DNA from: Eutreptiella sp. 'Long Island Sound 2002'
Taxonomy: Eukaryota > Protista > Euglenida
Direction of reading: 5' to 3'
NCBI GenBank assembly: GCA_964036045.1
Contig: OZ038378.1
Coordinates: forward strand, 806,001 to 870,000
Length of the DNA stretch: 64,000 bases
Shown: in pieces, positions 19,157 through 61,588 of the stretch
How positions within the stretch are numbered: the stretch's first letter is position 1
Layout: each line of letters starts with the position of its first letter
Position numbers and translations under genes: made by a program
The notes under the pieces: model-generated
Seen by the model: only the letters and a program-made list of their open reading frames with translations
What the model was told of the DNA's origin: nothing
Databases searched by the model: none

Positions 19157-20699
19157 AGAGCCAACATTCCTTGTGAAAAAAGAAAAAGGAGGTCTTCAGG
19201 AACGTCCTGCCCCCAGCCTGACCGCTGCCCCTGTGTACTGTGTACGCTGTGTAGGGCGGCCTGTTCGGATCTTGACACCAAACCGTGTGCGGAAACTTTT
19301 GGGGGCCTGGAAGGAGGAGGAGGTGGGTCGGCCGGTTGGCCGGTCAGCCGCCGGGGTCCCGGCCATGAAGCAACGGATACTTGGCTACCGAACGCCCCCG
19401 TGTCACAGGCGACCGGTCATTGCCACGCAAAGTTCAATCAGTTCCTCGTATTGTGCATTAATCACGACTGGAATGTTCCTTTGTGTACCTGCTCACAGGT
19501 CTGCTCTGCTTACGAAACACCAATACTATAGCACCTCAAAATCGTCTACCTCAAGCGATCCTCAACATGAAGATCTCAACTTCGATATCATTGCACCTTG
19601 ACATAATGTAATATCATGCCTTCCGAGTTCCCCCGGCTGGAGACCCACAAGTGAAGCTTAAAAGCGTTGCAGAGGCTCTACAGTGCTCCCCGACACTCAT
19701 TCGGTCTTGGGGAATCCAACAGCGGGCCATAGGAAGCTTTACGCCCCTGCCCAAACGTCAGCGACACTCAGAGAGAGCGAAGGCTGACAGGTCGTTGCCA
19801 ACACTTAGAGAAACCGCGGGTAGTGGGGTCAGGGCCGGAGGGGCCCTGAAGCATCAAGTTCGGCTGCCTGTACTCAAACAAAATGTAAAATCTATATATA
19901 CTGATCACTGTCTGGTCGGCTCGGCATGTTGAAAAGAAGCAGGCTCAAAACTGATCATCTAACTCCTGATGTGCCGGTGACATTTCCACTAGAGCCGCAT
20001 TCGGCCACTGCTCCTGACAGGTGTCCAGATGCAACCGAGCAACGGGGCTCAACTACGCGCATGTCCAAGACAATCAATTAATCCCGGGGTGGGGGGGGGT
20101 CCCGGGGTTGGGGGGGGGGGGGTCTGTGGGTATCCCAACATACATACCTCAGAATGATCCCCATGACGCGCTGATCATTTTGAATATACACAACTGGGGT
20201 AAAAAAATTTTCAGAAAGAATTTGCCCATCAGCTCAGGCTCCCAGCAGCCAAGGTCCGATCCAGAGGTCAGGTCAGGGGTCAAATTTGTTTTCATGTTTT
20301 TCAATCGTTTTTGAATTCTCCACAAAATTCTTAGTACTTTGAGTATAGACACATATGGTGAAAAAGGAAAATTACCCACTCAAGACGCCAAGAAAAAAAT
20401 AATCGGAGCCTTTGGCGCCATCACTTTTCCCAAATATCTCAATTTGGAGAAAGACATGTTCACTTCGAGGGGGGGTGGGGGTAATGCAGAAGGGTACACC
20501 TGTACAACAGCCCAAAGGACACCTCTTATCCGGAGGAAGGGTGTTTGATGGGACACAGGTGGTGGAAACGGCAAGGGGACAAGACATTTGCCCGCAAAGG
20601 GGGGGAGGGGTAGGTCAACGAAATTGTGAGCCCTTGAGTGTGAAAGTGCTGGAGGTATTTTTGAAAAACCATTGCCATTGGGATCACCAAAATCATCAA

Positions 20700-20868
20700 A
20701 ATCAAAAAATCCATTGGGAAATCATTTTGTCTGGCAAAATAATGATTTTACAAGGGGTTAGACATCCAATATCATGCCTTCGGGTATGCTATGCGAGCGA
20801 CCCCCAAAAAGGGGGGTGTACGGGTCTGCGCCTGTGCTTGATCTAACGACCTCTGTTCGAGGTGATTT
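20700..20868 (+). repeat. Dispersed structured repeat, copy 1 (others about 37142-37400 and 49379-49611)
   Basis: Shared core TTTACAAGGGGTTxGACATCCAATATCATGCCTTxGGGTATGCTA...GCTTGATCTAAC and a common right boundary AGGTGATT. Confidence 0.9.
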
Positions 20869-21065
20869 ATCTCAGTCAATACATTTAAGCCGCGATAAAA
20901 ATAATAAACCTTAACACAAAACAAAATGAGGGGGAAAACAGTATGTAAAACCCTCAAAAAGTACCTTTCATAATGACGGAGGGGCTGCCCTGCATCCCTC
21001 ATTTGGGCTGCTAGGCTCTGGCACGGATACCGAACCAAAAATCTCTGAAACCCTGACCCCCGGAC

Positions 21066-22637: not shown

Positions 22638-23929
22638 CTGCCCAAACCTCACCCGCACCAACACCCTCACAACAGGGCACCACAAAACCATCTGTACCCC
22701 CCCCCCCCCCCCTGCGACAACAATGGTCAAAAGCACTTAATAGGACGGAATCAATCCCTACTGCTACATTGACGAGGGCGTTGTTCTCACACGCACAGCA
22801 AGAAGACACAAGCATTCACCATTGCGTTGCGAATGTACTAGTCGCCAGGTTGATCCCGACGCTCCACCTCCAAAACAAGAATCGGTGAGAGTGGGTGGCA
22901 GGTCCCTACAATACCATGCACAGCTCCAAATCACAAAACGTCCATGGTCTTCATGGACAACCACAAAACGGAACCGCCCGCCATGGTTCCAACATGGCCA
23001 GGTTGCGGACAACCAAGTTGCAGAAACAACATCCAAGCTTGTGCCAACGCGGGTGGTGTTATGGCAACAGGGGGTAGGCAAAGTTCAGCATGCCGTCATT
23101 GGCCATCAAGTGCATCAAGACGGAGGAATGGCAGCCCTTATTAACCTTGTACCTCATTCAAAACGACAGCAGAGGGCCACCTCTCAGGGCTGGCTTTGCA
23201 TTTTGTAGGATGGGTCTGGGTTTCTTATTCTTTGGCACAAAAGCAATTTGGGCAACAAACTTGATTTCCGCCCACTTGTTTACATTCAAAATGCTCACAA
23301 TGGGTTAGGGAGTGCTTAATCTGCTTAATCTGCTGGCCAGGAGGCCTTTGCTAATTCACAGGTACATCTAGGTACATCTGTTGGAATCCGGTACTGTTTT
23401 TCATTTGTTCTGAGTGGTAAAACCAAATTTCACCCCACTTGTGTATATGCAACATGCTCACAATGAAATGGGGAATTCAAAAATGCCGCCCAAAATGGAG
23501 AAAACCACGCGGGCGTTGGTGTCTAGAACTGAACTGCAGACCCCCCCCCCCCGCGCGTGGCTAAATGTACATCCGAGTACGCATCACATTTCTTCGACTA
23601 TGGACAGGCCCTTGGTGATCTCCGGTCCCAGCGCTGTCATGTACCCCTCTTTGTGGAGGGACATACCCACCATGAAGAGACTGTCCGAACCTTTGAGGCA
23701 GCATGATGAGTGGATTTTATGTCCTTGTGATCTGATGTTTGCCATCCTGGGGAGGGCAATGAAGTGCATGTACGGACCAAGCTGCCCATGGCATTTGAGG
23801 GCAAGCTCTACTTTGCGATGGCTGCGATGCAATTGCCAGTTCTAAGCAAGTGCCAACTAGTATGGGTTGAGGGGTCCAGAACGGGCCATAAAGCAACGGA
23901 TACAGAGCTCACATATGCCCCCGCCTCAC

Positions 23930-24200: not shown

Positions 24201-24834
24201 GGTGTTGTGCCACTGTACTATCCCTCTATATCGGGGAGGGGGGCGGTTCTCGCTTGTTCCTGTTCCTATAGTCACTGACATCACTCTTGGTACTTGTGGA
24301 TCGCGCCCAAGTGAAGCGCGGGGGTAGGAAGCTTGGGCCAGGCTGGACTGTCATCAACTTCTCCAGTAGGGGGGCAAGGGGTTGGCGCACCTCCTTTTGT
24401 TGTTCTCACTGACATCCGTGCTGGGCAGCTTGGATCAGTTTGGGCTGTATCCACTGTCCTGTAAGGGGTGTGTGTGTGTGTGGGGGGGGGGGGGGGGTTG
24501 ATTCTTCTTTTTTGTGTGTTTTGCTGACGTCAGTGCTAAAATCAGACCCCTCTAGCCATCCATATAGCTTGCTGTCTTCTGAATCCGAGGCTTCACAGTG
24601 GAGTAGGCCTATCGCTGTGATTCTGTGTTCCTGGGATGTCTCTTCTTCTGCCTCACTCATTTCAACCAGGCCTAGCAACAACCATATGGCACCCGGCTGG
24701 TCGTCTGTTGAGCTGTTCATGCCATCCACCACCCATGTAACATTAGGCGGGGGGTGTCAGGCCTCACAAGTAAGCCCCCCCCCCCCTGCATTTAGCTAAT
24801 GAGACCAAACACATGCATTATATGTGTCTTATAC

Positions 24835-24861
24835 ATATGAGTCACCCTTAAAAGCTCATTG
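24835..24861. repeat. Candidate 27-bp target-site duplication, copy adjacent to the poly(A) tail
   Basis: ATATGAGTCACCCTTAAAAGCTCATTG versus ATATGAGTCATCGTGAAAAGCTCATTG at 30666-30692 (24/27 identical); abuts T12 at 24862-24873. Confidence 0.8.
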
Positions 24862-25051
24862 TTTTTTTTTTTTGACTGACTCCAGAAGTTCAAAGAGTAC
24901 TCAAGACTTTGCTTGGGAAAGTGGGCGACTCCAGCATATGATACAATGGATCCCTGCAACGCGGGGCACATGGCAAAGACCCAGAGTTCACATGCGTATA
25001 CCAGTGGGCTCTCTGATGCGGTAGGCAAAACCGCCACGCCATATGGCAAGC

Positions 25052-26370
25052 CTATAATGCGTAAGATTTAAGGGGATGAAGACATGCTGGATCACGGTGT
25101 GCCATTCCCCACGGGTCCTCAAGAGTGACAAGCTTTCGTCGCTTTGCAGGGGCCATGTCTGGTGGCGGGCGTTGGCCCAGGATGCCGGGCCTTTTGCGGC
25201 ACTGACGTTTGGGCAAAGGCGATTCCACCCGGTGGGCGGCGCGCTCAGATGCCCACAATTGGCTCATCACCGAAAAGAGCTGAATCCTTCGGTTATGCCG
25301 CTGGTAGTGTTGGTCTGCGGAGGTGGTCCACACTCTAGCACGTCGCAAAAGGGAGTGCCAGTGCCATGATTGCCGCACCACATCATCTAGCACGTCGCGG
25401 TATGAGTCCATCAGTGAGGCCCCGAGGACGGCACGTTGATGCAGAAACCAAGGCTGGGCTAGATACTGCATTGCCGAAGGTACCTGCTGTGCCCCTGGGT
25501 CCGCGGCAGTGGGACAGAGGCACTGGTCGAGATATTTCACCGCCCATGACCTGGTGTGGTACGACTGCGGCCGGTCCCATGTGCGCACCGCTCTACGGTG
25601 GGACATCTCTTGAGAGGCGCGGCCATCCCGTCGTGATGTTCTCTCCCGGGGCCCTGTATACCCTACTTGATTGCGGAGGATAGAGTCCGTGGGGTTCGGT
25701 CGTAAAGCTCGTGGGCGCAGCTTTGTGTACCATGCCGGCACCGCTGTGGAGGGCGTGGGCGGCACCTGTGGGTCGCGAGGGGGCATGCTGAGTTGGCCGC
25801 GCAGTTGGCATACGCCATGTAAAGCGTGGTACTGGTGCCATGCCACACGCTCCCTGAGGTCTACCCGCATTGTTCGGGGGATGTGGTCCCATAGGGACTG
25901 TGGTATGCGAAGGCAGGAGACATGGTGTAGGTCCGCCGCGGACGCCCTGTTCCACCATTCCGTTACCGTATCTTGCCACGGTCCCCAGGTGCTAAGCCAC
26001 ATGTTGCGAAATGCGACTTTCCAACGCATGCAGTGGATGAGGCGCTTGTGGACAGTGGTACCGTGATGGAGGGGACACATGGGGCATTTGGGGGTGGTAT
26101 GGTCCCACGGCGCGCCCGTCCCATCCCATCGTACCTGGCCCCACAGCCATTTAACCCACAGCATACGTCGGTCCCCGCGCATCGGCAGCCAGGATACCCA
26201 GTGCGCACCGTCAAAAGTGACAACACGCCTCCGCTGGAGGATCCATTTCCGCGCCGGAGTGGGGGCGGGCCCGCCGCACATTGCAATATCTTCGGGGTGC
26301 CGGGGGTCGTAATCCGGCACGGGTAGGCGCGTGGCCATCTTGGCGAGCAGGTCTACTTCCCCATTGCGCC
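25052..26370 (-). pseudogene. 5'-truncated non-LTR retrotransposon ORF2-like C-terminal fragment
   Basis: Over 430 open codons with CPMCPLHHGTTVHKRLIHC (C-x2-C-x8-H-x5-C, zinc-knuckle-like) in Trp-rich context, followed by about 180 nt and A12; no RT core motifs present. Confidence 0.55.
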
Positions 26371-27514
26371 GAATTAAAAAAAAAATTTTTTTTAATGGAA
26401 CCAATAGTATGGACTGGGACCACACCAGCACCAGTCTTGCACGCAGTGCCACTGAAATTTACTCCACCCATCTGGTGCTGTATGCTGCACTGCAAGCATA
26501 TCTGCCGGGTCACAGCGCATTTGTCACCTCTCCACTGCCCACTTGATGGCAAGGCCAACAAACGCACAGACAATTGGTGTTCTACCAATCACATTACAAG
26601 ATGCAGGGGCCCAAAATTACCGGGGCCCAAAATTACCGTCCAGAGATGTTCGGTTCCAAATACCAACAGCTGGCACATGCAATGGAAGGGGCATTGGAGC
26701 TCACAAAAGAGGGAACCTACTTTTTTCCAGCACTACTTGTGCAGTATGCCCCATGCCCCTGCTTTTCCTGAAATTCCGTGCACATCACAATAATTTTCGA
26801 ATCGCCGGTCTTCTTTGGTTTTACAAAAATTGGACCTCTAAGGTAAATCTGTTGAATGACTTCAATAGACAGTCTAACCTGTCTTTGAAGGCAGAGAATG
26901 TGCCAAATGCAGTGCATCCTAACCCTTTTCCACATGTTACCATAAGCTTGACAAATGTGTGATGAATGATCTGGACATGGGATTAGCTCAACACCTCAGC
27001 ACACCTCATAGTAGGTAGCAATGGAGTTGCTCCACTTCCTACCGAGAGGTCGCTGGATGCATTGTTGCAATAGTGCGTTGCTCCACCGCAAGTCCAACAA
27101 CATGCTTGTGGCAAACCCCAATTGCGCTCCTTGTAAAGGGCAGGCTGGGGTGGTTCCTGCCGGACTTATAATGCAATTTCAATGTTCAGGCAACAAACGC
27201 CCTGTGGCGCCATGCACACCGCTGCGCAGCGCAAACCAGAGCAGTGCCGAATGTTGCCTTCAGTTCTCCACTTATCGAAGGTTATCAAATATTTCTTGGG
27301 CTGTCTGGGTTAACTCATCCCCCTGCCACAGGTTGGCCTCAAACCATGCTGCACACGGGGGTTCAGTGGGGGTAGTTGAGCTCCAAAAGGAATGTTGTGA
27401 GTCACGTGACGGCACTGAAGCATTGAAGAACATGGGTACTAATACGCAAGGTGCCCAGGGAGGGTCAACACTTGCTCCCTCTGGCCATAGAGGTCAGGGG
27501 GTTTCGAACCTCCG

Positions 27515-28609
27515 ACTCGTGACTCAGTACTCCGCTCTGCCGGCATGGCACCCTGATCCCACGCCTCACACAAATGTCGGTACAAAACCCATTGGAAGGT
27601 TTCCATTGTGTGATGTGTGGCGAAATTCCGTCCATGCCCAGGAAATTTGTCCGAGGCTGTTGTGCCACTGCTAGACCTCCAATGTACTGGAAAGCAGCCG
27701 TTGCAGCAGTTATGGACTGATGAGCAGCAATCCTTACCACTGACATCCATCACTGCAGCTTGGCACTTGTAAAAGACGCACATGCCACATACATGACTTG
27801 AAGAAAAGGTTGGGAGTGGTGGTGGTCAGGATGGAGGGGGCAAGAAGGTGTGGCACAAGGCCTTGCAACGGTTACCAGCAAGGACAAGAGGAGGAGAGGT
27901 GATGCGATCGAAAGGAGCACGGTAAAGCCTGCCCTCTGCATTCCTCACCCGAACCAATGCTTTCGAAGGCAGATACCATAAACAGTGCAAGGGCCAAAGG
28001 TCATACCCATCCAACGCCGCCTCGCATGACCAAACATGCAACACAATACCCCAGTGCTTCCAACTCGTGACTCAGTACTCCGCTCTGCCGGCATGGCACC
28101 CTGATCCCACGCCTCACACAAATGTCGGTACAAAACCCATTGGAAGGTTTCCATTGTGTGATGTGTGGCGAAATTCCGTCCATGCCCAGGAAATTTGTCC
28201 GAGGCTGTTGTGCCACTGCTAGACCTCCAATGTACTGGAAAGCAGCCGTTGCAGCAGTTATGGACTGATGAGCAGCAATCCTTACCACTGACATCCATCA
28301 CTGCAGCTTGGCACTTGTAAAAGACGCACATGCCACATACATGACTTGAAGAAAAGGTTGGGAGTGGTGGTGGTCAGGATGGAGGGGGCAAGAAGGTGTG
28401 GCACAAGGCCTTGCAACGGTTACCAGCAAGGACAAGAGGAGGAGAGGTGATGCGATCGAAAGGAGCACGGTAAAGCCTGTCCTCTGCATTCCTCACCCGA
28501 ACCAATGCTTTCGAAGGCAGATACCATAAACAGTGCAAGGGCCAAAGGTCATACCCATCCAACGCCGCCTCGCATGACCAAACATGCAACACAATACCCC
28601 AGTGCTTCC
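27515..28609. repeat. Near-perfect tandem duplication, 548-bp period
   Basis: ACTCGTGACTCAG starts at 27515 and 28063; GTGCTTCC ends at 28061 and 28609; I noticed one substitution (GCCTGCCCT / GCCTGTCCT). Confidence 0.95.
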
Positions 28610-29315
28610 GTGCAACCCTCACATCCCATTACTCCGTGCAACACTCCATCACACGGTCACAGTGCAACACAATGTCGATGTGCGCTGACGTCCAACTCAG
28701 AGCGGAGGCAACAGGGCCGCCAGGGAACAGCAGTCCTCCACAGGAGGGGATGTTCAGGAAATCCCCTCTCCTTCTGGTGGTATGAAGAAATGAAGTTTGC
28801 AACGTCAGACAAGAAATGCAGTGCGAACATGTGCGATGGGTCTGGAGCAAATCTGGCTCCAAATGACGGTGGGAGGTCTTAGAGTCGCCACGGCTGTAGT
28901 GAGGGTCTAAAGCACTGTGGGGCATTGTTGATTGTTGTTGAGGGTTGTTCAGGGATGTGGACGGTTTCTGTTGCCATAGAGGAACGGTCAGGGCCGTTGG
29001 CGTGTTGAGGAATGGCGAGGGTCAACAGGGGTGAGCTGATCGACACAAGTGCCAGTTTGAATGGAACTCGTGTCCTGGTATTAGACCCCTATGAGGCTCA
29101 CTGAAGAAATGTTGAATTGGATTGAATATGGTGCATTACGTGAGTTATCAAGGGGATTCTAGGCCGGTCTGAACAAAGGGTCAACAAGGACTAGACATGA
29201 GACACTGTACATGGGAGCACGTTTAGACGTCAGCTCAACAAAAAAAAGGCTGCTGCTGACCTATACTGCTCTCTCTTCTGAACTTCCTCAACCTCCTCAC
29301 GACTCGCCGTTCTCA

Positions 29316-30620
29316 TTAGTCATCAGCGAACATGCAACAGAGAACACAGCAAAAAATTACGGCATAAATTGATGAGTACACGATCCACTGCACCATACAC
29401 GACGTGGTCTGCGATTGCAGTTCTGATTGCATGGTGTACGGAGTGTACTCAGACACCCAGTTGATAAAAAGCCTCTTGTACCCGCGATCAGAGGCAGGGA
29501 ATAATTTGGCTGCCGTGGTATATTGCCCATACTCCTCCGACTCCATCATTGCATACACCGACCGCGAGCGGTAGACTTGCGCAAATCCCCCAGGTCTGTA
29601 ATTCCATCCGCAATTCTGCTGAGCAGCTGCTCCACAATCTCCAGTGGTGGAGTAGCATATGGCAACTGGGATGATACCCTCGCAGTGGTCGGCGACCGGA
29701 CTTTTGTAATATCTGCCCGCATCCGTAACCGTCTTCAACTTCACTGGGGCTGCACAAAATGTGTAGCGCTTCCCCTCCGCCACAAGAACCTGCATCTTGA
29801 CGCTGGTGCGGTCGATCGTCCAATCGGGATCCGTAAAGCGAATCCATTCAATATCGTCATTCCAACGCTTCGGTGAAATAGTGGGGCCTGGGCTCTTCCA
29901 ACAATTCGCCTCAGCAATGTAGGGCATGATTGCCCGTTGGCACATAAAGGGCATGGTGTTGGTACACGCATTGACCTGGAATCCGTCCAGAGAAGCAGAT
30001 GCACACCCAGCCACGTGCTCATCTTGCGCCTTTTTCCATGGTCTGTATGCAGAAGGCAGCAGGGAGGGATAAACCCACTTGGCTTGAGTACTTGCAGCCG
30101 TCACACCACCTCCTGTTCCTGTGCTAAGCCCAGTCCAAAAGTTCGAAACGCTGGCATTCAGTGCTACTTGTCCCAAATAATTGAGCGCCCCGGGGGTTGT
30201 GATTGCCACAAGTTCCGCCTTTAGACCGTCGCAATGATCAGTCGCACTGTGCCAACTGCTCGGCTCCGTGAACAACTTGTAGCACTGATTGTCGTAACTG
30301 ACCCAACCGACGCCACAATCGGTTTGGTAGATCAAATCTCGTGACACGGCCACCTTTTGGGCAGTCACGGCAAGCGGAAACGAAGTCCCAAGAGCCATCA
30401 TAAACGAAACAATACAGAGTGCGATTCCAAGCTCCGAGTTGTCTTCATCGTCTGTGGTACCGGCAATTATCGCCAAGGCACAAATCCAAACGGCTGCCAT
30501 ACCAAAGTTGATAAGGAATGACCATCCCCATACTTCGAACAAGCCAACCATGTAACAAAGCCCAAGTTGTGTAAAGAACAAGATTGGACAAAGTATAATG
30601 CAAGGGGAAATCCGAGGCAT
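29316..30620 (-). CDS. Intronless multipass membrane protein with C-type lectin-like domain (434 aa); retrogene
   Basis: ATG at 30620 (MPRISPC); about 3 N-terminal hydrophobic segments; CGVGWVSYDNQCYKLF...SWHSATDHC...LVAI...FWTGL...C...C...FMCQ CTLD pattern; Cys-rich second region; C-terminal hydrophobic segment. Confidence 0.9.
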   Translation of the reverse strand: MPRISPCIILCPILFFTQLGLCYMVGLFEVWGWSFLINFGMAAVWICALAIIAGTTDDEDNSELGIALCIVSFMMALGTSFPLAVTAQKVAVSRDLIYQTDCGVGWVSYDNQCYKLFTEPSSWHSATDHCDGLKAELVAITTPGALNYLGQVALNASVSNFWTGLSTGTGGGVTAASTQAKWVYPSLLPSAYRPWKKAQDEHVAGCASASLDGFQVNACTNTMPFMCQRAIMPYIAEANCWKSPGPTISPKRWNDDIEWIRFTDPDWTIDRTSVKMQVLVAEGKRYTFCAAPVKLKTVTDAGRYYKSPVADHCEGIIPVAICYSTTGDCGAAAQQNCGWNYRPGGFAQVYRSRSVYAMMESEEYGQYTTAAKLFPASDRGYKRLFINWVSEYTPYTMQSELQSQTTSCMVQWIVYSSIYAVIFCCVLCCMFADD

Positions 30621-30636
30621 GGTAGCTGCAACCAAA

Positions 30637-30664
30637 CGAAAAAAAATAGACACTCAGAAAGTGT
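30637..30664 (-). other. Genomic copy of the complete 28-nt euglenid spliced-leader exon
   Basis: Minus strand reads ACACTTTCTGAGTGTCTATTTTTTTTCG, the euglenid SL as I recall it from the literature. It is followed by a 16-nt 5'UTR and ATG, not by the GT of an SL-RNA intron. Confidence 0.95.
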
Positions 30665-30665
30665 G

Positions 30666-30692
30666 ATATGAGTCATCGTGAAAAGCTCATTG
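30666..30692. repeat. Candidate 27-bp target-site duplication, copy adjacent to the SL
   Basis: Separated from the first SL base by a single nucleotide (30665); matches 24835-24861 at 24/27. Confidence 0.8.
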
Positions 30693-33600
30693 TGCACGAG
30701 GAGGCTCTCGGTCACTCCTCTTTTTTCGCTTACACCTAAGAACCGCAATGCTAATGCTATGCTTCTGCTTAGACTGTAAAATTACTGCTGTACCCTAGAA
30801 AATGCCCAACACGGTGGAGAACTCGGCTGCACAACTGCGTACGGCATGGGGCTGAGTTTGCCCCATTAGGGTCCTTATCAGGGAAAAAACAAGTGGTCTT
30901 GTACGCAAGTTTCCCAAAAAAGCCCGTGGGCACTCTATGTGTTCAACCACTACTTCCTAGCCCTTTATGTCGTCACCCACGGGTTCCCAACTGGTCAACC
31001 ATTGGTTCCTAGCCCCACATGTGTGCAATCACTCAACCATTTGTTTCTACCCCCACATGTGTTCAGTGATAGCACCTAAACCCCACCTGACACCTAGCAC
31101 AATTCAACATGAACCAATGTTTTTTTCATCAAATGTAGTGACACGGCGTTCGACCACCCGAATGTTCAATCGCCGGTGGCATGACTGATAACAAACTCCC
31201 TACAACTAGTACAACCATTGGAAGTGCACCTTGACACGCTCCATAAGCTCACCCTTCGCCCCTCTCACGCTCAACCCACACTTCCCGCAAATGGTCTTGA
31301 ACTCAACACTAGTCCACTCATCTTGCCCCTCTCCATTGCCTGCAACACCGCCTCATCCACATCATACGCGAACACCATTTGCGAGGGGGGTTCAAAGGAG
31401 GTAGAGGGGAGGACTAGTGGGTTATGAAGGTTAGAAGAGGAGCTGCGAGAAGAGGAGGTGCTGGCAACTACACCTACCTGGTCCAAATCCTCATCGTCAC
31501 TATCCTCGTCCTCCTCTGGCCCAACCCCGTGCACATCCCAAATATCGGTGTCACGAGTTGCCTTCTTGGGGACAACCCACAAACCTTGAATGTTCAAAGG
31601 AACCTATACCTATGCACCCTCTTCCAAAGAAACTTGCAAATCCTTGAAAGCAGCAAACCACCATCCTCAACCTCAACCACATGCCCTTCCGCTTCCGTGG
31701 GCAAAAAGGGGTCTTCCGGAGCTCATCAAACACCAAAAAGCAAAGGGCCCCAGTCCTATGTTGCTTCCCCACTACACCTCACCCATAGCGCCTCACACAT
31801 GCGCTCCGTGCTCTAACCAAATTCGGTGGCTGTCACGTAGCTGAACACTTTGACACGAACACGAGCTTGCCTCAACCCGATCCTCCACCGGACAACACAA
31901 ACCCACTACACTTCATCAAAGCGTGTTTGCACATGTTCAATCACAGTGCGAAGAAACTGTAGCCAGCTACCCTTGATGGGGCCACTCTCTACCTCAACAC
32001 CCAACGATTCCTGCCACCCCCCCCCCAGCATGATGTGACGCTTGGTGTGCAAAAGTTGGTTGAACACGAGTTTTTCATTACCCCCACACAGCCCCTCAAG
32101 CTAGGATCGTTGCCTCACACATGCAAGAGTCCTTCAGCTATGTACATAAAGTTTAGTCTAGGGTTAGCAAGATAAGCAAATTTAGTTAGGGTTAGGCAAA
32201 AGCATGCTGCATATGACGTTGACCAAACCCCGGACGGCGGCGACTTGAACACCCCTTGTCGCTTGAACTTTCTTGCTAGCGGCACAAACCATAGTCAAAC
32301 TTGAAAAGGGGGTGCAAAAGATCATCCAACAAGCCCTCGGCCTTCTCCCTACGCCCAAGGTCAACCTCATTATGAATGTACTCAGTAAGGCGCAAGAGAG
32401 TAGCAGGAAGGTTCTCTAGAACAATGTCTAACTCATGGAACAGCTTCAACCCATCACACACCAGTGCGACGAGAGAAACAAAGCTTACCACCTTTGCGCC
32501 ACGACCCGCGCATTCTTTTGGGACTAGTTTTGTAGAAACAAGCCAAGGACGGACAAGGACGGTTAGGTTCCCCATAGGTACAGAAACCACCAAAGCAAAG
32601 CTCGCGACAGCCTTGGGTTCCCGGAAGGTACTTCCGTAGCACTTGCCTCCACAAGCGATCAACGTGCACGGTATTGCTACGTAACCCGTGCGTTCTTGGG
32701 GGTCCCAACAAAAGGGGACAAAATCAAAAGTGGCTACATCACCCTTGCCTTCTCGGGGGCCTGAAAACGGGCGGCATTACTACGGTCCCCGAGAAAGGGG
32801 GGGGGACAAAAATGGCCTGTGTCGGGCCAATGGAAAAAGGCCCGTCGTCCTTAAGGGCTATCCTTAATAAAGAAAAAAATGGTTCCCAGAGGACCCCTGG
32901 ATGCCTTGGATGTGTCATATGACAACCGTACCCGATTCCGTTTGTATTCATCATTTGTGTCCATAAACACTCGCGACAGTGCAACTGTGCTAAAAACCCA
33001 ATGCTTGTGTGCTATTGTGACACGAAAGCAGGGTGTGGCGTGGGACACACATCTTGGGGGGCACTATGCGCACACATACAACCGTACACCCCCCAACCCG
33101 GGGCGCGGTAAAATGCACTCTTTTTAAAAACAAGCGCACATCAGGGCTTTAACCCCTTGGAACGGAAATGTATGACCAATGAGAATTTTACGGCGCCAAC
33201 GCTGTAGACATTGACGAATCTTAGTCAAATTTTACATTTTTTGTGTATTGAGTTGTATTTGAAAAATATAGCTCTGGCGGCGTTTTAAACTAATAGTGTA
33301 GGATCCAAACCTTGTTGAGAAATTGTAGGACGGGTCGTGGGCGTCCCTAGGGAAATGTATAAAAGAGACCTACAAAGGGGTAGATGGCTATAAGTTGCAT
33401 TTTACAGACAAGCTAGAAGATGTCCCCCTAAGTGGACAACAGCAAGAGGGGAAATATTGATCAAATATGCCCCAAACAGCCATTCAATGCTCCCAATTTT
33501 TGTAATTTTCAATGCAATCATTAACCCTCAATTCCACGTCTCATCACCAAAATGTTTATGGCGCTGGCCCCCTTAAAAAAAACGTTTTTGCTTGAGTGAT

Positions 33601-37038: not shown

Positions 37039-37099
37039 GAAGGATTCGAACCGCCGACCAAAAAGTCTGCAGCCGGCTGCATTACCATTCGATTGGGGC
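37039..37099 (-). pseudogene. tRNA-derived sequence (tRNA-Cys-like loop CTGCAGA), SINE-associated, not an intact tRNA
   Basis: Minus strand TCGAATGGTAATGCAGCCGGCTGCAGACTTTTTGGTCGGCGGTTCGAATCC; anticodon and acceptor stems do not pair. Confidence 0.55.
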
Positions 37100-38838
37100 T
37101 TATTGTGACAGCGATGTGCCTCCCCACTGCTTGGAGCCTTCTGACCACAAACTTTTGACACCCCCCCCATCCCCCACCTCTCCCCCCCCTCAAAAAAGTC
37201 ATATCCAGTTTTGGGGGATAGAGTCCTCAGAATCAAAAACTCCATTGGGGGATTGTCTTATTGGGCAAAATAAGGATTTTACAAGGGGTTGGACATCCAA
37301 TATCATGCCTTGGGGTATGCTATGCAAATGACCCCCAAAAAGATGGGGTATATGACGCCCGCGCCTGCGCTTGATCTAACAACCTCTCTTCAAGGTGATT
37401 CCTGTTCAGAGAAAGATTTCAACAGCAGGATGCTCCAACAAGGCTGGTTCAGGTTATGGAGAAATGATCGTGTACAGCAAGCCAGTGCTTTGTCTTATGT
37501 GTGCCCTGCTTTTGTTGATAGAGTCCTTCGTGTCCATCGGGAGTGGGGGAAATGCGATTTTGCAGGGTAGAGTGGAATGGTTGTCCCCCTGCTCCTGATT
37601 GTGGAAGCACCACTTGAAAAGGCCGCATTCAGGGTCTGCTGCGTGTGAGGTTGTGTCCCCTGCGGCGCGGTGCATTTCCAAGCATCGCCCCATTCCGTGC
37701 TGGCGCCGGCAGAGGCTTCATACGCAGTTGTTCCCATGCTCGTGAAATCCGGAAGGCGCTGTCCAGCACATCTGATGCGGGGCGGGTAATACCAGACCAC
37801 AGAGTGTCACCCAAGCGGTGTGCTGCATTATCCAGAACATTGCATTCAGCCCTTTGATGATGCTGGCGCAGTGTGGACCACCCCCTGAGCCATGGTCACG
37901 TGCAAGAAAGCGTCGGGTAGTGATTGTGCATGTTTGCATGTGTGTGGGGGGGGCAGCTACTCCAACAGCGTGTGAGGGAGAGCAGCACTGCTGGTGATGG
38001 TACGGGTTGTGGTGGTGGTGGTGGTGCCGTGTGGGTGGCATGTAGGGATTGGAGTGGTGGCGATATGGTGGTGGGGGGGGTGATGGCAGTGGTGCTGGTG
38101 ATGATAGTGGTGGCGGTCGAGGGCGTGGTACGGGTGGTGATCCGGGTGGTGGGGTGTGGGTGTGGGGGTGGCGCTGCTGCCATCCACGGTCGGCTGCATA
38201 GCACCTGCCCCACCCCGACTGCCCTCACCGAACCACAAATTCCCTGGTAATTACCGCCGGTCTGCCATCAACCACACTCCCGCCTCACCCCAGCGGACGG
38301 CGGACTGCGTGTGTTCAGGGGGTGGATAGAGGCATGACCGAAAACTACAGTGGCGCACTACGATAGGGGTGGGCGGGTTTCCAACTCCAGGGATCAATGG
38401 TCGGTATCGATCGACTGAATGTCCCCGCCATAGACACTTTCAGCCACTGGTCCATAGGTTCTCGCACAATTGCATGTGTCCCCTTCCAACTTCGGGGGGG
38501 GGGGGGATCGATACAGCCCTCTAGCTAGGCCGCCCCCCCCCCCCCCTAAAAGGCTCAATTGACCCCCCCCCCCCCAAGAATCATACCAAGACTGACCCCC
38601 AGGCCCCGGAGGTGCAGCACGTCCAGGGGGTGCAGAAAATGCATCATTTGTATTTGGTGACAACAAAAATTTTGGGAATTTTCAATGCTCACCAATTTTT
38701 CAGAGCCTTTGGCGCCACAGTTCATCATAACTGATCACTGGACCTGTTGATTGAGCCCTGTTGCTGAACCTTACCCCCCAGGTTTTGGGGGGTTCAACCC
38801 CCCCCCACCCCCCCTCCCAACTTGAAAACCCGGTTCCC

Positions 38839-54130: not shown

Positions 54131-57100
54131 GCTCTTGCAGGGATCCAGCCATTACCTGTATGCTGGGTCTTTGGGACAGTTCCCATACCTGCCAACATGC
54201 TCCGACTTGTCACATACACTGTTTTATCACGGCTCTCTACCGCGGAGGAAGACAGCTGAGACCATGTGCATTTGGGCCACACCCCCTTTCCTGTCCATAC
54301 TTTTGATTGCTTTAGAGAGCCGTGGGCAGACCCAACAACACTCTGTGCAGAACCACCGAGGCACGGGGGGGGGGGGGGGGGATGGAAATTGCGAAAATTT
54401 GGAACGGCGAAATTGCTGTATGTGAGGGAGCCCGGCGCACTGCACATCACACCAAGCGCGGTGTTTCGTGTGCTGTTTCTAGTATTTTCTAGGAATTTTC
54501 AGTTTGGCAAGGACGCGGCGGCCTGAGGGATAAGCATATAACAGTGGAGGGCTCCACTCAAACTCCTCAACAATGCAATGGTGGTTGTAGCCGCCAACAC
54601 CCCCTGCTAGGGGAGGCCGTAGGTTGATGATGAGAGGAGAAGGATGCACTGTTTGACACCGTCGTTACATCAAAGAGGCATGAACCCCACGTTTGGAATC
54701 GCTACCATAGGGGTTGCCCAGGCCCACAAGGCAGCTGTTTCATCTGTTTTGTGTTTCAAATCGCTACCAAGAATGTTGTGCCATTGTGCAGCCATGTATA
54801 ACAATGCTTCTGTGACTTGGTCAGCGGGCCATCTAGTTTGAGCGATGTGGACGAGAAAAAAGATTGTAGAACAGTTTCAGGGCTGAAAAAAAGCGGTATG
54901 CTGTGCAACAAGCAAATGCACAGACCCTTGTTTGAATATCAAGCATTGATGGTCTACAAAGAATGTGCACACCCCACCACCTAGCCCTGTGCACGCATCC
55001 GTGGAAGACGTTTGTGCCTCTGAGTGTGGGTTGCTTTTTTCCCAAAGGGGAGGGGTTGAGGCACCCGTGGCTATTGTCCACCATCACAACAGCCATCACA
55101 ACATGGCTTGGCGCCCTTTATTCTGCAGCCATGGCAGATGGGCTCACCGCGGGGTCACAGGGCCGATGAGGTGCTGAAAAAATGCACAGAGGGTAGATAG
55201 AATAGTGCCACCTGAACAAGTGATAGAGGGAACACCCAAAAGACAGCGGCGCGCTAGGCTTCCTTTGTTTATAACACTTGGTGCCGAGTTTTCAGTGGAC
55301 CAAATGTGATCCATAGTATGGCCTGGAACATTCAGTGGGACTGCCATTCCCTTTTTGCTCTTTTTGCATGCTCTTTCTGCTTTGTCACCCTTCCTTACCA
55401 ATCCAAGCACGCACGACGCCTATCTGCCGACGCCGACACCGATGTCTGTCTGCTAGGGCTTTCGCCACCGGAGGTCTGCAAGGGAAGGCATCTCATGCCA
55501 GAACGAGATGCATTGGACTCCACACCGCCAGACCCTGGGTAAAGACCGGCTTGCATGCATTTGGAAATGGCCCCACTTCCAAGGCTTTCAAGGTGTGCAA
55601 AAAGTGCAAATTCTACACAGTGCGCCCACGGCGCGTGCGCACAACACCTAATGTGCCCCCCTGTGCAAGCATGTCACTCACCAGCCAACAGTGTTGGATG
55701 GTATGCCATATCTACAGCGAAATTCACAATCCAAGGGACCTGTTCGGTCAATTTGGTCATACTTTTGCAATTTTCTCCTCTTGCAATTGTGATTGCTGCA
55801 TTGGCTTTCCATCCACCTCAAATTTGTGGAGTGCTATTATGAATTTCCGGTGGTCACAACAACCACTGCAGCCACAACAACAACCGCAGCAACGAACAGA
55901 AAAGCAACGGCAGCAGCACCACGAGCACCACTAGCAGCACCACCACAAGCAGCAGCAGCAACCGCAAGCGGGACCGCCCTTTCCTTTGGCCCTGGTGGTT
56001 ACCTATCCGAATACTATTTTTTTTTGTTCATCCACCAGTCCAAAATTCGGCCCCATGCAGGGAGCAGAATCATGCCAACACCATGGTCCATAATGGTTTG
56101 TTGATATGCCGGTTTGTCCGAGGCGTTGACAAACACTCCCTCGGATTTCCGGCAGTGGTACATTCAACCATCAACGGTATGCCTCTTGGCCACGCGTCTA
56201 CATGTGACACTGGGTACAGCATGTCTCTTCTGTCTTACATGCATCGCGTACTTGTCGCTTCTACCTCTACGCATCATGTCATGCTTACTCTCTCCCTCAG
56301 CCTATCCATCTCCTCTATTCCATTCATCCACTTGCACACCTCTCATTGTGTGTACCCTCTCTCACCCTCTGTCGCGCTCTCTCCTCTCTTGACACCACCT
56401 CTTTACAGCTGTGTGCGTGTTGGGGGGGGGGATCACCCTATTGGAGAAGGAAGCCCACATGGGCCTCAGTGTCAGAGCGCACTTATGCAGACCCCTTACT
56501 CGCAGAAACCCTTACTCGTGGCGCGTGTGCCGAGGCCGTCGTTCGCTCGTGCGCAAACTGCGAGGTTCAACATTCCTACGATCCTATTCCCTGCAGATAA
56601 CCATGTGCTCCGTGTCCCAAAGCCCTGCAAAGGCCACCCTGGCCAGGGTCTAGGATCTCCATATGGACAGAGTGCTGCCAACAAACTGCGGCCCCTGCCC
56701 TTGAGTCCAGCCTACAGAGCACCAAAATACACATGCACAACCATGTGCCCTGCCACCTCCCCCACTACCCGCCCATGCATCCCTGGCTGCTGACGCCCCC
56801 CCCCCCCCCAGCGAGGTCGGGACTGACAGAAGACTGGCTGGACTGGGTGCCTGGGGCATCAAAGCCTGCAGCAACCCAGACGACGGACCGTTGGTTAAGT
56901 CCGCCATCAGCAGGCAGAGGTCTCTGCTAGGGCCTTGTGCCCACTCACCACAGCACAAGGATGCAGCACCCGGCGATATCCTCCCCCGCCCCCCCGCCCC
57001 CCCCCCCGCAGCAAACAACGCAAAACCCAGTCAGAAGGCAACCACATTGCAATGAACAACCGAGACATGCAGCAGAGTAGTGCAAACAAAGGGCACCCAT

Positions 57101-58482
57101 GAGCAAGCTTTCATGCCGCAAGATGCAAGCCCTGGATCTGGCCACAAAGGTGTCAGGCCACAAAGGTGTAAGAGAGGAAAATTACACAGCAATACAGACG
57201 CGCAGCAACACTGATGCGCGGGAGCCCCCGCCGCTCTCTTTGAGTGTGTGTGATGTCCCAGATAACTGCAATGTATTGACAGCCAGTGCTTAGTGCTTGT
57301 GAGCTTGCCGTTGCTGGGCAACAGCACAGTGGGGCACAGCCAACCCTCATATTTGGGTACTAAAGAAAAACAGGACTGTAGACCAGAATGGACAACGAGG
57401 GGGCGCTATGCAGCTGATTTTAGCCCACATGAGATGTTTACTTTCGCTTAGATGAAACAAACAAATTGGAGTTCGTCGGTTGGTTGAGCAACGACACACA
57501 AGGTGTTGTGCACTCAAGCCCACAACAACTAAAACTTGTTTCATGGACCACTTATCTATGCTGTATCATCCATGATATTCATGGCTGTGCCTGCCAAAAA
57601 GAACGTCATGGTGCATGTATCTGCAGTATGTGCATACATGGCTGCAATCATTCGGGGCCATTCCTCAACTCTGCACTCCAAGGAAGCAGGCTACCCAGCT
57701 GATGGGCCTATTGACATAAGTTCATTTGTAATTTGCCCACAGAAGTCAAAGCTGCTCATCGCAAGACAAACATCCAGTCTCCACCTTGGGCACAGGGGTC
57801 TGTGTATATATAACTCCCTGCAGGAGGGCGATTGAAACGCCCTGAACCCTGGCACCAGCTCTCTTAGGCACCTTCCAACCTCCATATTTTTCTCAACCAA
57901 TACCTGAGCCCGCTTATGAGGCAAACATCCATTGTCAAGGAACGGTCGGAATAAAGCAGCCCCAAAATGATGTTAGAGCTGCAGCAGTAAAGTTCCAGAA
58001 AACTTCAGTCAACGCAATCTTTGCAATATCTTCAGCTATATGCTAGAAAATGACGGCAGAAGCAACCATAAAGTAGTGGCATGGGAGGACAATGGTGCAG
58101 TCAAACAGATACAGAGCAAGATGGACTGCTCTGCACTGTGAGTGGTGTGCCAGTTGTGACTATGGGCTGCAGTTGCTTGAGCGGAGTGGTGACCATTAAC
58201 CTGGAGCCCAAAGTGCCATCTTAGCAGCTTTTGTCCGCTCCCGACAATCCCTCAAATGCTGGTCTGCAGCAGTGAATGTCTTGGCTAGTAATCGTGATCC
58301 ACGGTGACTGAAACCCTCCACAAGACACTCTTTGGACCAACCTGAAGCATCAGTGGGGGCTGTGGAAGGCGACCTGTGGACTGTGGGCTGCAGCTGAACC
58401 TCAGTACCATCACGTGCGCCTTCCGACACATGAAAGAAAATCATGAAAAACGCAATCATGCTTTTATCGTATGAGGTGCTGT

Positions 58483-61008
58483 CTACCAGAAATCGTCGTC
58501 GTCACTGTCTGGCACTCTCCTCCTCGCTCCCTTGCCTCGGCCACCTTTGCCTTTTCCACCCTTACCGCCCTTCCCACCTCCGCCCTTCCCACCTCTGCCC
58601 TTACCTGACTGCTCCAACCATTCCCTGTAAAATTCATCACCAGGCCAATACTTACCACTCTTCCGCCTCTGATCATACTTTTTCTGCCACTGATACCGCG
58701 CCTTCGCCTCCCTTTGATTGTTCTCCTTTCGAACTGCCCAATATCCTTGGTTCTTCCACAGCCAGTCCCTCTTCTTCTTATCCCTTGCCACAAGCCGGCG
58801 CCTTTTCTTCTCCTTTCTGTACTCGTTGATGTCCCCCTTGTCAACAATCTTGTAGTTTTTGGAACGCCCAAACGCCTCCTGCACCGGTCGATCAAGTTCC
58901 ACCATCTGCTCTATCTTCTCTGCCAGGCGCGCCTCCTCCGGCAAATACATGGTCCACGCCCATCCTGGCACTTTGTTGCGGGCTGTCCGACCCACACAGT
59001 GCAGCCACTCAACTGCATTAGGGGGGAACTCAAAACAGATCACATGATTAACGACTGCAAGATCAATGCCCCGCGCAGCTGCGGGAGACGCCACCAGAAT
59101 GGGCAATTCTCCCGATCTGAAAGCCTCTAGCCGCGTGTGCTTTGCCTGTGACCGCTGGTGGTAGGTCTGTGCATCATGCCCCGCGTTCCTCAGCGCCTCA
59201 GCAGCAGCTTCCACGTTCGCCTTGCTGCAAGCGAATACCAGCACGTGGCTGTCTCCCTTCGACATAACATCCTCCATGAGATCCATGAACTGCTCCATAC
59301 GGTTCTCTTCAGAACACGGCACAAATTTATGTGTTAGTGTCTCGGAGATACGGTGCAGCCGCTGACCGCGGACCCAGGTAGCATTTGGGAACTTCTTCAG
59401 GACGGTTCTGGCTAGATTCTCCTCCCGTGCCCCCGGACTCCCTGACAAAGTTGCCCCCACGAGCACGTACTGGGTCTGGGTCCCATCCTTCTTGTTCTTC
59501 CTCGCAAGGAGCTTCAAGACATCCTCCGTCGGCACCCGCTGGGCCTCGAACATGTGGTCTGCCTCATCGAAAACCGCGACGTCGAAGCCACGAATCTCTT
59601 TGTCACCGAAATATTGCGTGATGTACGGCGGTGTGCCAATGACAATGTCAGGCTCGCCTTCGGGCACATACTCGGTGTATGCCATCACATTGTCCACCTG
59701 AATCCAGCGGTCATCCTCCGGCAGAGCCTGCATTAGGCCTTCTAATACACGGGCGACCTGGTTTGAAAGCTGCTTGCTCGGTTGGAGGATCAGCAACCGG
59801 ATTTGCTCCCCCTTGAGCATCCGCTGCAGCATGGGAACGAGATATGCAAGGGTCTTCCCAGACCCTGTCTCCGCCAGCATCACCACGTCACCACCCCCCA
59901 GGATCGGCGCCCATGAGCCGCTTTGAATGGGGTTCGCGGAGGTGAAACCACCTTCCGACAGTGCGTCAATGAGGTCTGGCGTGGCTCCCAGCTCAGCAAA
60001 AGATTCATCTTGGTCCCGTGGAACGACGTTCACAGTCGCTTTGGGGGTAAGTTTGACCCACTCCTCTTCCTCATCCTCTCCTTCCTTGGGCTCTGCGTCT
60101 TCCCAGTCCGTGTTACCATAGGCCCAAGGGGGCAGCAACGTACCATCGTCCAGCCTGATCCAACCACCGATGCTTATAGGCTCTTCTTCTTGTTCTTCTT
60201 CACTGTCATACTCGTCCCCACTGTCACTCCTGTCACCATATTGGTCGTCCTGCAGCCACCCATCCCAACCCCCTTTGCCGTCGTAACTCCAACTACCATC
60301 CTCGTCCCATTTGCCGCCATAATTCCACCTTTCGTCAGCTCTTTGGCCATTATCCCACGCTCGATCCCTACCCCAGCCTTGATCGTTTCCCCACCGCCTG
60401 TCCTGATTGCTACCCTGACCCCATTGGTTGCGGCCCCACCTCTGGTCACCGCCCCACATAGGATCGTCTTGATCAACTTCCCCATCCTCGCGCCAATCAC
60501 TCCAAGAGTCCCAGCCATTATAGCTGTTATCCGCTTGTCCAGTGTTCCGATAGGCTGCTGCTGTAGCCACAGGAGGCAGAAGAGGCATCTGGCTGTGCAC
60601 CCGTCTACCTCTGAGCACGAAGAGAACAACCAACCCGATAGCCATACCAATCCCTAGGACTGGCCCTTGCCAAACCCAATTGCTGACAACTGCATGAGGC
60701 TGGTCACCAGATAGCCTGAAAGACTTGCTATTGGACAGCATCGATTCAACCTCTGGTGAAGGCAACTGAGGAGATCTGCGTGCAGGTCTTGCAAGCTGGG
60801 TCCGCACATTTGTCGAAGTCGATATTCGCTCGGTGATGCCCGCAGTCCGACTCGATGGCGAAAGGGCTGCAATCAAGAGATGGCCATCAGCATCCGCTGG
60901 GCGTGCACTGAGTGCGCCAGAGGTCATGGCCCCCATTACCACAACCCCTGTTGCCAACAGCATGCAGGGAATAGCCTGGAAGCCTCTTGGTCCCTGAGTG
61001 TCTGCCAT
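58483..61008 (-). CDS. Intronless DEAD-box RNA helicase with euglenid class-I plastid-targeting presequence (841 aa)
   Basis: Q motif SFAELG...PIQ, AETGSGKT, PSKQL, TPPY, DEAD, GAT, ARGID, HCVGRTAR; N-terminus has a hydrophobic signal, an S/T/R-rich transit region, a second hydrophobic segment (VLGIGMAIGLVVLFVL) and basic RGRR; GK/RG-rich C-terminus. Confidence 0.95.
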   Translation of the reverse strand: MADTQGPRGFQAIPCMLLATGVVVMGAMTSGALSARPADADGHLLIAALSPSSRTAGITERISTSTNVRTQLARPARRSPQLPSPEVESMLSNSKSFRLSGDQPHAVVSNWVWQGPVLGIGMAIGLVVLFVLRGRRVHSQMPLLPPVATAAAYRNTGQADNSYNGWDSWSDWREDGEVDQDDPMWGGDQRWGRNQWGQGSNQDRRWGNDQGWGRDRAWDNGQRADERWNYGGKWDEDGSWSYDGKGGWDGWLQDDQYGDRSDSGDEYDSEEEQEEEPISIGGWIRLDDGTLLPPWAYGNTDWEDAEPKEGEDEEEEWVKLTPKATVNVVPRDQDESFAELGATPDLIDALSEGGFTSANPIQSGSWAPILGGGDVVMLAETGSGKTLAYLVPMLQRMLKGEQIRLLILQPSKQLSNQVARVLEGLMQALPEDDRWIQVDNVMAYTEYVPEGEPDIVIGTPPYITQYFGDKEIRGFDVAVFDEADHMFEAQRVPTEDVLKLLARKNKKDGTQTQYVLVGATLSGSPGAREENLARTVLKKFPNATWVRGQRLHRISETLTHKFVPCSEENRMEQFMDLMEDVMSKGDSHVLVFACSKANVEAAAEALRNAGHDAQTYHQRSQAKHTRLEAFRSGELPILVASPAAARGIDLAVVNHVICFEFPPNAVEWLHCVGRTARNKVPGWAWTMYLPEEARLAEKIEQMVELDRPVQEAFGRSKNYKIVDKGDINEYRKEKKRRRLVARDKKKRDWLWKNQGYWAVRKENNQREAKARYQWQKKYDQRRKSGKYWPGDEFYREWLEQSGKGRGGKGGGGKGGKGGKGKGGRGKGARRRVPDSDDDDFW

Positions 61009-61038
61009 TAAGAATGTGGAGTCAAAACAGCATCAAAA

Positions 61039-61052
61039 CGAAAAAAATAGAC
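61039..61052 (-). other. Truncated spliced-leader relic upstream of the helicase ATG
   Basis: Minus strand GTCTATTTTTTTCG equals the 3' half of the SL with 7 rather than 8 T; 30 nt before the ATG. Confidence 0.75.
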
Positions 61053-61588
61053 CTTGCCCCTGGTGATTACCTGCACAAACAATATGAGACGAATGGGAAG
61101 CCGGTGTTTCATGATGCTGTTGCAATCCTTCGCCTGGAGAAGGTGGGGGGGGGGGGGGGGCTAGCTTGAAACAATGCAAGCAACTCAAGGGGCAGCAAAG
61201 CAAACCAAAAAAAAAGCAAACAAAAACCACCCCATTTCCCAACTATTCAAGGGGTCCAAAAAACAGAGGGTTTAAAAAACCCACCCCGCGTTTTACTTTT
61301 CAGATCTGCCCCCCCCCCCCCCCCAAGCCACCGGTGACGAAAATATTATCCAACACAATGGCACATGGGACAAGCCTCTCCTCACGGGAGGGGACATGCC
61401 GCCTTGGCGAGTCATCAACTTCATCATTGTGGAAGGTATCCATTTTATTCTGGTTATCCCTTGTTGCCTACAAACTTTGGTGACTGGGCACCCACTGGAA
61501 GGGCTCCTATTTTTCACCGAGCTTAGAAGTCAAGGCTTGGTGGATGTCGTTATCACAGGGGGAATCCTTGCACTGCGCGCCACTGTTA

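Follow-up and report, generated by a model that had tools for sequence, protein, structure and literature searches.

Processed pseudogenes and retrogenes of the L1 type, in animals and plants, are known by intron loss, poly(A), a target-site duplication and a parent gene elsewhere (reviewed in PMC5470649). In trypanosomatids, the site-specific elements SLACS, CZAR and CRE, which are retrotransposons devoid of long terminal repeats (non-LTR), reside within the genes for the spliced leader (SL) RNA. Dinoflagellates carry SL-tagged, or 'recycled', retrogenes (Slamovits and Keeling 2008; PMC6050394; PMC5585692; PMC12014239), for which the mediating retroelement was stated as unknown and LTR elements were favoured (PMC6050394). 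Template switching by long interspersed elements (LINEs) has been described for the mammalian U6/L1 and mRNA/L1 chimeras (PMC4476161; bioRxiv 10.1101/2025.02.02.635956), as well as for the MGL-LINE chimeras of Magnaporthe (PMC2104539). Here we report an SL-tagged lectin retrocopy that ends in a LINE fragment, found in a 64,000-nucleotide (nt) stretch of the euglenid Eutreptiella sp. 'Long Island Sound 2002' (contig OZ038378.1 of assembly GCA_964036045.1, positions 806,001 to 870,000; hereafter the window).

The insert, its spliced leader and its parent gene

The insert occupies the minus strand, on which its features are read; coordinates are those of the window unless another contig is given. 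That it is a retrocopy of a cis-spliced, SL-trans-spliced and polyadenylated lectin mRNA is as good as established. A sequence-only reading of the window had described an SL, a 16-nt 5' untranslated region (5'UTR), an intronless open reading frame (ORF) of 434 amino acids (aa), an A12 and a pair of 27-bp repeats, all of which we recovered on the minus strand where that reading had placed them. The 'about 4.4 kb of further sequence' that it reported behind the ORF is present, though not as one tract: it is made up of the 3'UTR, an A8 plus a T10, a LINE fragment and the A12. The mRNA's poly(A), likewise, does exist, but as the internal A8 rather than as the A12, which is the tail of the LINE fragment. 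Because the mRNA tail is thus internal and the terminal one is the LINE's, the insert is an mRNA-LINE chimera, with the following layout:

30693-30666, minus: 5' target-site duplication, ACAATGAGCTTTTCACGATGACTCATAT; 25/28 match to 24835-24862
30665, minus: one extra C between duplication and SL, not in the 3' duplication copy
30664-30637, minus: complete 28-nt spliced leader in DNA, ACACTTTCTGAGTGTCTATTTTTTTTCG; exact match
30636-30621, minus: 16-nt 5'UTR, TTTGGTTGCAGCTACC; homology with parent exon 1 from 30636
30620-29316, minus: intact intronless ORF of 434 codons from ATG, C-type lectin membrane protein
29315-26394, minus: lectin 3'UTR, 2.9 kb, with the polyadenylation site end ...GGTTCCATT; collinear with the parent's last exon and with transcript contigs L003 and L007
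27511-28609, minus: 548-bp tandem duplication within the 3'UTR
26393-26386, minus: A8, remnant of the mRNA poly(A); the parent gene gives no template
26385-26376, minus: T10 filler at the boundary of mRNA tail and LINE fragment, from neither source
26375-24874, minus: 5'-truncated non-LTR retrotransposon 3' part, 1.5 kb, comprising the C-terminal region of ORF2 past RNase H and a 3'UTR ending in GGAGTCAGTC
24873-24862, minus: A12, tail of the LINE fragment and priming end of the insertion
24861-24835, minus: 3' target-site duplication, CAATGAGCTTTTAAGGGTGACTCATAT

The duplication flanks the whole insert directly. Its 27-mer occurs in only two copies in the 64 kb (30692-30666 and 24861-24835; 24/27 match, 0 expected by chance), which supports its earlier interpretation as a target-site duplication and not as a dispersed repeat, and it is extended by a preceding A to 25/28. 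No empty (pre-insertion) site was found by looking up the flanking ORFs or by two scans of metagenome contigs for junction words, with no suitable genome from a relative available for comparison. The extra C at 30665 may be untemplated or may be the base that precedes the SL in the SL RNA; TATC before ACAC is also seen in some genomic SL contigs.

The 28-nt leader has a single exact match in the window (0 expected by chance) and is identical to the Eutreptiella mRNA leader in the form given in the published account (PMC3621762). It is followed by the lectin 5'UTR and coding sequence (CDS), with no SL RNA intron, and is placed exactly at the trans-splice junction of the mRNA. At the equivalent point the parent gene reads ...TCACTCATCTAG/TTTTGGTTGCAG/CTACCATG, with a ...CATCTAG acceptor and no SL, and the homology between copy and parent begins at 30636, the first base past the leader. 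A second AG acceptor lies inside the 5'UTR (TTGCAG/CTACC), and both acceptors are used in transcript contigs, which read SL/TTTTGGTTGCAG... (SL/TTTTGG) at the first AG in L007 and SL/CTACC at the second in L006. Since the parent has no SL here and transcripts join it at AG acceptors, the leader of the window copy can have had no route into DNA other than through RNA. The claim that an SL fused to a CDS in DNA betrays a reverse-transcribed mature mRNA thus held at this locus, where the parent presents an AG acceptor at that very point.

The SL-containing words (30596-30703) reach a depth of ~1e5 in DNA runs X1, X3, X7 and X13, and many different sequences stand before or after the SL in genomic contigs; either the SL is very widely written into this genome or the SL RNA genes are very numerous.

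The intron-containing parent for which the sequence-only reading had proposed to look was found on ctg9655 of the same ENA assembly. A first look-up through one transcript-borne ORF returned only that transcript; the cluster to which an ORF borne on the 3'UTR belongs then led to ctg9655, retrieved as L010 and L016. Alignment of ctg9655 with the window copy and with the transcript contigs resolves 12 exons as far as the last coding one, interrupted by 11 introns that are all GT-AG and 237-3295 nt long; the spliced parent ORF is intact. All 11 introns are precisely absent from the window copy, at exact exon junctions (approximate positions in the copy 30548/9, 30434/5, 30319/20, 30218/9, 30112/3, 30013/4, 29926/7, 29838/9, 29679/80, 29586/7 and 29465/6). 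At the polyadenylation site, the parent and the read-through transcript contigs read GGTTCCATT/TGCTTCCTTGC... (TGCTTCC...), while the window copy reads GGTTCCATT/AAAAAAAA. The A8, although short for a poly(A) tract, is therefore an untemplated remnant of the mRNA tail, because parent and read-through transcripts continue there with unrelated sequence.

A stretch of 238 nt (window 29091-29328; L016 18896), present in both lectin retrocopies described here and in all transcript contigs, is missing from the assembly's parent allele. This difference alters the C-terminus (MLGV* versus MFADD* or CCLLL*), and the joint without the 238 nt is also present in runs X3, X4 and X6.

Genomic reads spanning the leader junction, which the sequence-only reading had named as a check, were found in two studies: their short-read unitigs join the SL to duplication and flank, and do so at single-copy depth. 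In DNA run X1, a 94-nt unitig (30640-30733, comprising SL, C, duplication and 40 nt of flank) shows no differences and has a depth of 33.9, as compared with 32.9 for the next flank unitig. A 372-nt contig of X7, which belongs to a different study, spans 30639-30900 and beyond. Loose ends in the bridging runs at 29679, 29927, 30012, 30320 and 30549 read the parent intron ends, indicating that these runs are DNA in which intron-bearing and intronless forms are both represented. Over 21 kb, the window is 99.995% identical to L002, a third contig, which carries the window's own protein.

The 434-aa ORF encodes a C-type lectin domain (Pfam PF00059, E 6.5e-08). Its closest proteins come from the MMETSP Eutreptiella transcriptome and from estuary metatranscriptomes, and the protein search also gave one of 98% identity, encoded on another contig of one ENA assembly. 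Private codon changes in the window ORF number 2 synonymous and 3 non-synonymous, too few to judge selection, and with only these five changes the intactness of the ORF says little on function. At depth 2, the window's variant type is present in X13, a run of unknown library kind. The 548-bp duplication in the 3'UTR is private to the window copy, since the parent, the second lectin retrocopy and the transcripts have one unit; two mismatches separate the units, and the unitig of the unit has about 2x the neighbouring depth in X1 and X3. A CGGA-like microhomology is seen at the duplication joint. The duplication could have arisen by a backward jump of the reverse transcriptase or by later slippage.

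The LINE fragment and further retrocopies

The 1.5-kb piece is GC-rich and carries a long ORF (442 aa) in the same orientation as the lectin. Pfam gave no match for this ORF, and its identity came from an exhaustive protein search, which returned 324 relatives, combined with Pfam on the long ones. In the long relatives, the match falls just past RNase H in proteins with Exo_endo_phos (an AP-type endonuclease), RVT_1 and RNase_H domains: relative P0035 (1566 aa) has all three and is matched at residues 1217-1465, and P0015 has RVT_1 and RNase_H and is matched at 538-821. The word depth of the piece is 17,000-150,000 in DNA runs X1 and X3, as compared with ~35-55 for unique sequence, and many contigs diverge, as loose ends, at the A-run (24862-24865). 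On account of the relatives' domains, this depth and the divergence at the A-run, the piece is the 3' end of a non-LTR retrotransposon of very high copy number, and the A12 is that element's own tail. With L017, an ordinary copy of the element, the piece shares 87.6% identity, and both L017 and a second locus have the same GGAGTCAGTC(CC) end followed by A11.

The insert therefore consists of two unrelated RNA-derived parts in the same orientation, the 3' one being a 5'-truncated LINE that ends in poly(A). Both lie within one duplication pair, and no separate duplication surrounds the LINE piece, although an all-A duplication is possible at the window locus. No other copies of the insert or of the LINE were found elsewhere in the window. 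Across ~126 kb of genomic DNA, LINE copies occurred only on the two lectin retrocopies, apart from L017, which had been fetched because it carries the element. The composite's target, GTGCA/CAATG, resembles that of L017, GTGCA/AGTCC. At the position of the T10, two other LINE copies read GAAC(G/A)CGAACA, and a run of at least 6 A followed by at least 6 T occurs only at this junction in 139 kb.

A second retrocopy of the same lectin mRNA was found on ctg10140 (L001). It is intronless, has the same order of parts and an A11 tail, and is flanked by perfect 27-bp copies of TATGTGTTGAAGAGGACGGGGATTTTC (L001 9684-9710 and 17667-17693), which shows that retroposition of the lectin mRNA is a recurring process. 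Its SL lacks the first bases and is joined to the target through a TTTC microhomology. Such joins are typical of the 5' ends of insertions of this kind. Tandem truncated SL relics of the dinoflagellate type were not seen at the two loci, which have a single complete SL (window) and one 5'-shortened SL (L001). At the mRNA/LINE junction of L001, the 3'UTR ends at the equivalent of window 27320, with no A-run, and the LINE piece begins 495 nt further upstream than the window's, inside RNase H; the window copy has 930 nt more 3'UTR, plus the A8T10. The LINE parts of the two copies are 92-93% identical, whereas the mRNA parts differ by ~0.7-1.5% in substitutions. Because the junctions differ and the LINE parts are far less alike than the mRNA parts, the two are independent chimeras, neither derivable from the other. 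Private substitutions number 14 in the window copy, 13 in L001 and 13 in the parent, a star-like pattern with ~0.5% per branch.

The coding part of transcript contigs from other strains (MMETSP and estuary samples) is of the L001 type, with 0 differences in 1272 nt, and one of these contigs has the SL at the CTACC acceptor. This fits a new round of trans-splicing behind the DNA-encoded SL of L001, whose T8 lies 11 nt upstream of the AG; a parental allele of the L001 type is another possible source of these transcripts. The L001 CDS also has a 17-nt deletion that causes a frameshift past the N-terminal membrane segments (L001 9950-10000; equivalent of window 30357-30373), as well as clustered substitutions. 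Nested within the L001 LINE piece is a 3.1-kb insertion (L001 13926-17080) whose ends show a 9-nt overlap; repeats related to this insertion lie at window 37041-37400 and 20696-20869. Another complete SL in DNA lies on the minus strand of L001 at 95-126, with GGTGAT before it and ATTGACCGTCAGCATTTTGTTGATGG, not GT, after it; a similar contig is present in X3, and this leader may belong to a further SL-bearing insert or to a repeat family.

The window itself contains another retrocopy (55983-61062, minus), with a truncated SL, GTCTATTTTTTTCG, at ~61040-61027, an intronless 841-aa ORF at 61008-58483, an A9 at 56025-56017 and no LINE tail; a candidate duplication of ~21 bp, AGGTAA(T/C)CACCAGGG(G/C)CAA(A)G, is found on both sides. 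Homopolymer runs of 12-14 G or C recur at window 24773-24799, 23538-23564 and 61146-61160 and at L001 17800-17812, some of them within a short shared motif, AG(A/C)C12...GCTAA.

Origin of the chimera

We favour, with a probability of roughly 0.6, a single event of target-primed reverse transcription, in which synthesis began on LINE RNA before the template was switched to the lectin mRNA. The machinery would have been the endonuclease, reverse transcriptase and RNase H of the high-copy non-LTR retrotransposon. Its endonuclease would nick the target at GTGCA/CAATGAG, and reverse transcription would start on the tail of the element's own RNA, giving the A12, and copy the last 1.5 kb. The enzyme would then jump to the 3' end of the lectin mRNA and copy through to the 5' end of the SL, and a second nick 27-28 bp away would generate the duplication. 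Following insertion, the copy would have gained the 548-bp tandem duplication and ~0.5% private substitutions. Whereas the loss of introns, the SL, the A8, the LINE fragment, the second copy and the reads are directly seen, that one event of template switching produced both parts is what we infer from them.

The alternative to which most weight must be given is that the chimera formed in two steps, in which a plain processed retrocopy was made first and a 5'-truncated LINE later inserted into its poly(A), in the same orientation, with L001 additionally losing ~930 bp of 3'UTR. Such a course is possible, and we hold it unlikely. A T-rich primer for target-primed reverse transcription is available at an A-rich tail, and A8 and A12 indeed stand on either side of the LINE piece; direct retroposition of mRNA does occur in this genome, as seen from the 841-aa-ORF retrocopy without a LINE tail; and the element's duplications can be as short as the 11-13 bp of L017, so that an all-A duplication could hide at the junction. 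Duplication length had been considered as an argument against the two steps and was dropped, as the ordinary copy of the element has only those 11-13 bp. However, the same rare second strike would be needed at both lectin retrocopies, and L001 would require a deletion with an end that places the LINE tail exactly against the perfect 27-bp duplication. Moreover, at neither locus does a non-A duplication surround the LINE piece, the element's ordinary targets, as far as seen, are of the type GTGCA/... and not A-runs, and the T10 is left unexplained by this course too. A single event is favoured because one duplication pair encloses both parts at both loci, because the LINE piece of L001 has its tail directly against a perfect duplication and its 5' end fused to the interior of the 3'UTR, and because the LINE copies within ~126 kb sit only on the retrocopies (bar L017), at a target that resembles that of L017.

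The other explanations fare worse against the same data. A single master chimera of SL, lectin mRNA and LINE tail, spreading as a non-autonomous element that borrows the LINE 3' end, would account for the gene, the order of parts and the LINE 3' terminus being shared between the two loci, but is very improbable: the junctions differ on both sides, neither copy can be derived from the other by deletion, and LINE parts of 92-93% identity do not match mRNA parts that differ by ~0.7-1.5%. We rejected it on the incompatibility of the two mRNA/LINE junctions. Retroposition of one long transcript, read through from a source gene with a LINE fragment downstream or in its 3'UTR (5' transduction), would also place one duplication pair around both parts, yet it is exceedingly improbable, as unrelated unique sequence follows the poly(A) site in parental DNA and transcripts, the ~9 kb downstream of the parent hold no copy of the LINE, and the A8 and T10 of the junction have no parental template. 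For the parent allele in hand it was rejected, given the missing downstream LINE and the untemplated A8T10. An artefact, by which cDNA contamination or misassembly put mRNA sequence into the assembly, could draw on the fact that the window and the ENA contig belong to the same assembly and are not independent. It is extremely improbable in view of the flanking duplication of a local target, the setting of the insert in a 1.45-Mb contig of ordinary coverage (37x), the bridging unitigs at single-copy depth in X1 and in X7 from an unrelated study, and L001, which has the same hallmarks with a different duplication.

Several points weigh against the single-event origin that we prefer, or against the evidence on which it is built. 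A simple jump onto a poly(A) tail would not lead one to expect the T10, and LINE insertion into the A-rich tails of older retrocopies is a known process that, together with target deletion, could mimic both loci. The three mismatches between the duplication copies form a cluster (CACGA versus AAGGG). Because SL words have a depth of ~1e5, flank, SL and CDS are not joined in any one unitig, and the evidence from long contigs comes from one assembly only. With the 238 nt missing from the assembly's parent allele, the exact source allele is not in hand. Finally, no transcripts of the window's own variant type were present in RNA runs X4 and X6, which held the other variant type only.

The T10 could be an untemplated addition by the reverse transcriptase. 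A more specific and quite tentative idea, to which we give little credence, is that A8T10 is the fossil of the oligo(U) tail of a deadenylated lectin mRNA (A8U10), copied end to end after the jump from the LINE. If this were true, the LINE would start mainly on its own 3' end, and retrogenes would often be LINE-tailed chimeras; their junctions would record intermediates of mRNA decay and would identify the element behind retrogene formation in a trans-splicing lineage.

Relation to known systems

Processed retrocopies and LINE template-switch chimeras are both established, so that the class of mechanism is not new. The present case is unusually complete: its 5' end is proven by the SL, the parent has been identified together with its 11 introns, the retroelement family is attached, and the poly(A) site can be compared with the parent base by base. 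It extends SL-tagged gene recycling from dinoflagellates to euglenids, for which our literature searches found no report of SL-tagged retrogenes, a result that is not proof of absence. It also indicates a LINE as the agent, a question that was left open for dinoflagellates (PMC6050394). SLs encoded in DNA can serve as a genome-wide marker with which retrogenes may be found and dated, and may explain intronless genes in an intron-rich, repeat-rich genome.

As in the dinoflagellate retrogenes, a normally RNA-only SL is encoded in DNA directly before a gene and marks the reverse transcription of a mature mRNA. The locus differs from them in belonging to the euglenid lineage, with a different SL, in having a complete and single SL in place of stacked truncated relics, and in uniting all hallmarks (a parent with 11 introns, a poly(A) remnant and a duplication) with a physically attached source of the enzyme. 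The SL and the non-LTR retrotransposon sequence that adjoin here recall SLACS, CZAR and CRE, in which SL sequence likewise adjoins such an element in a euglenozoan genome. Those elements, however, interrupt the SL RNA gene, whereas here the SL is followed by a 5'UTR and CDS and the LINE lies 4.3 kb away, at the other end; with no SL RNA intron after the SL, membership in this group was rejected.

With L1-type retrogenes the insert shares the loss of introns, poly(A), the target-site duplication and a parent elsewhere, and it is set apart from them by the SL, which marks the 5' end as complete, and by ending in a LINE and not in the tail of the mRNA. The U6/L1, mRNA/L1 and MGL-LINE chimeras match it in having a 5' part from a cellular RNA and a 3' part from a 5'-truncated LINE with poly(A), in the same orientation, within one duplication and with variable junction positions. 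In contrast to these, the 5' partner here is a full-length 4.2-kb protein-coding mRNA with a cap-proximal SL and a remnant of its tail, the junction holds an A8T10 filler, the LINE belongs to an RNase H-bearing euglenid family, and the same mRNA was captured twice.

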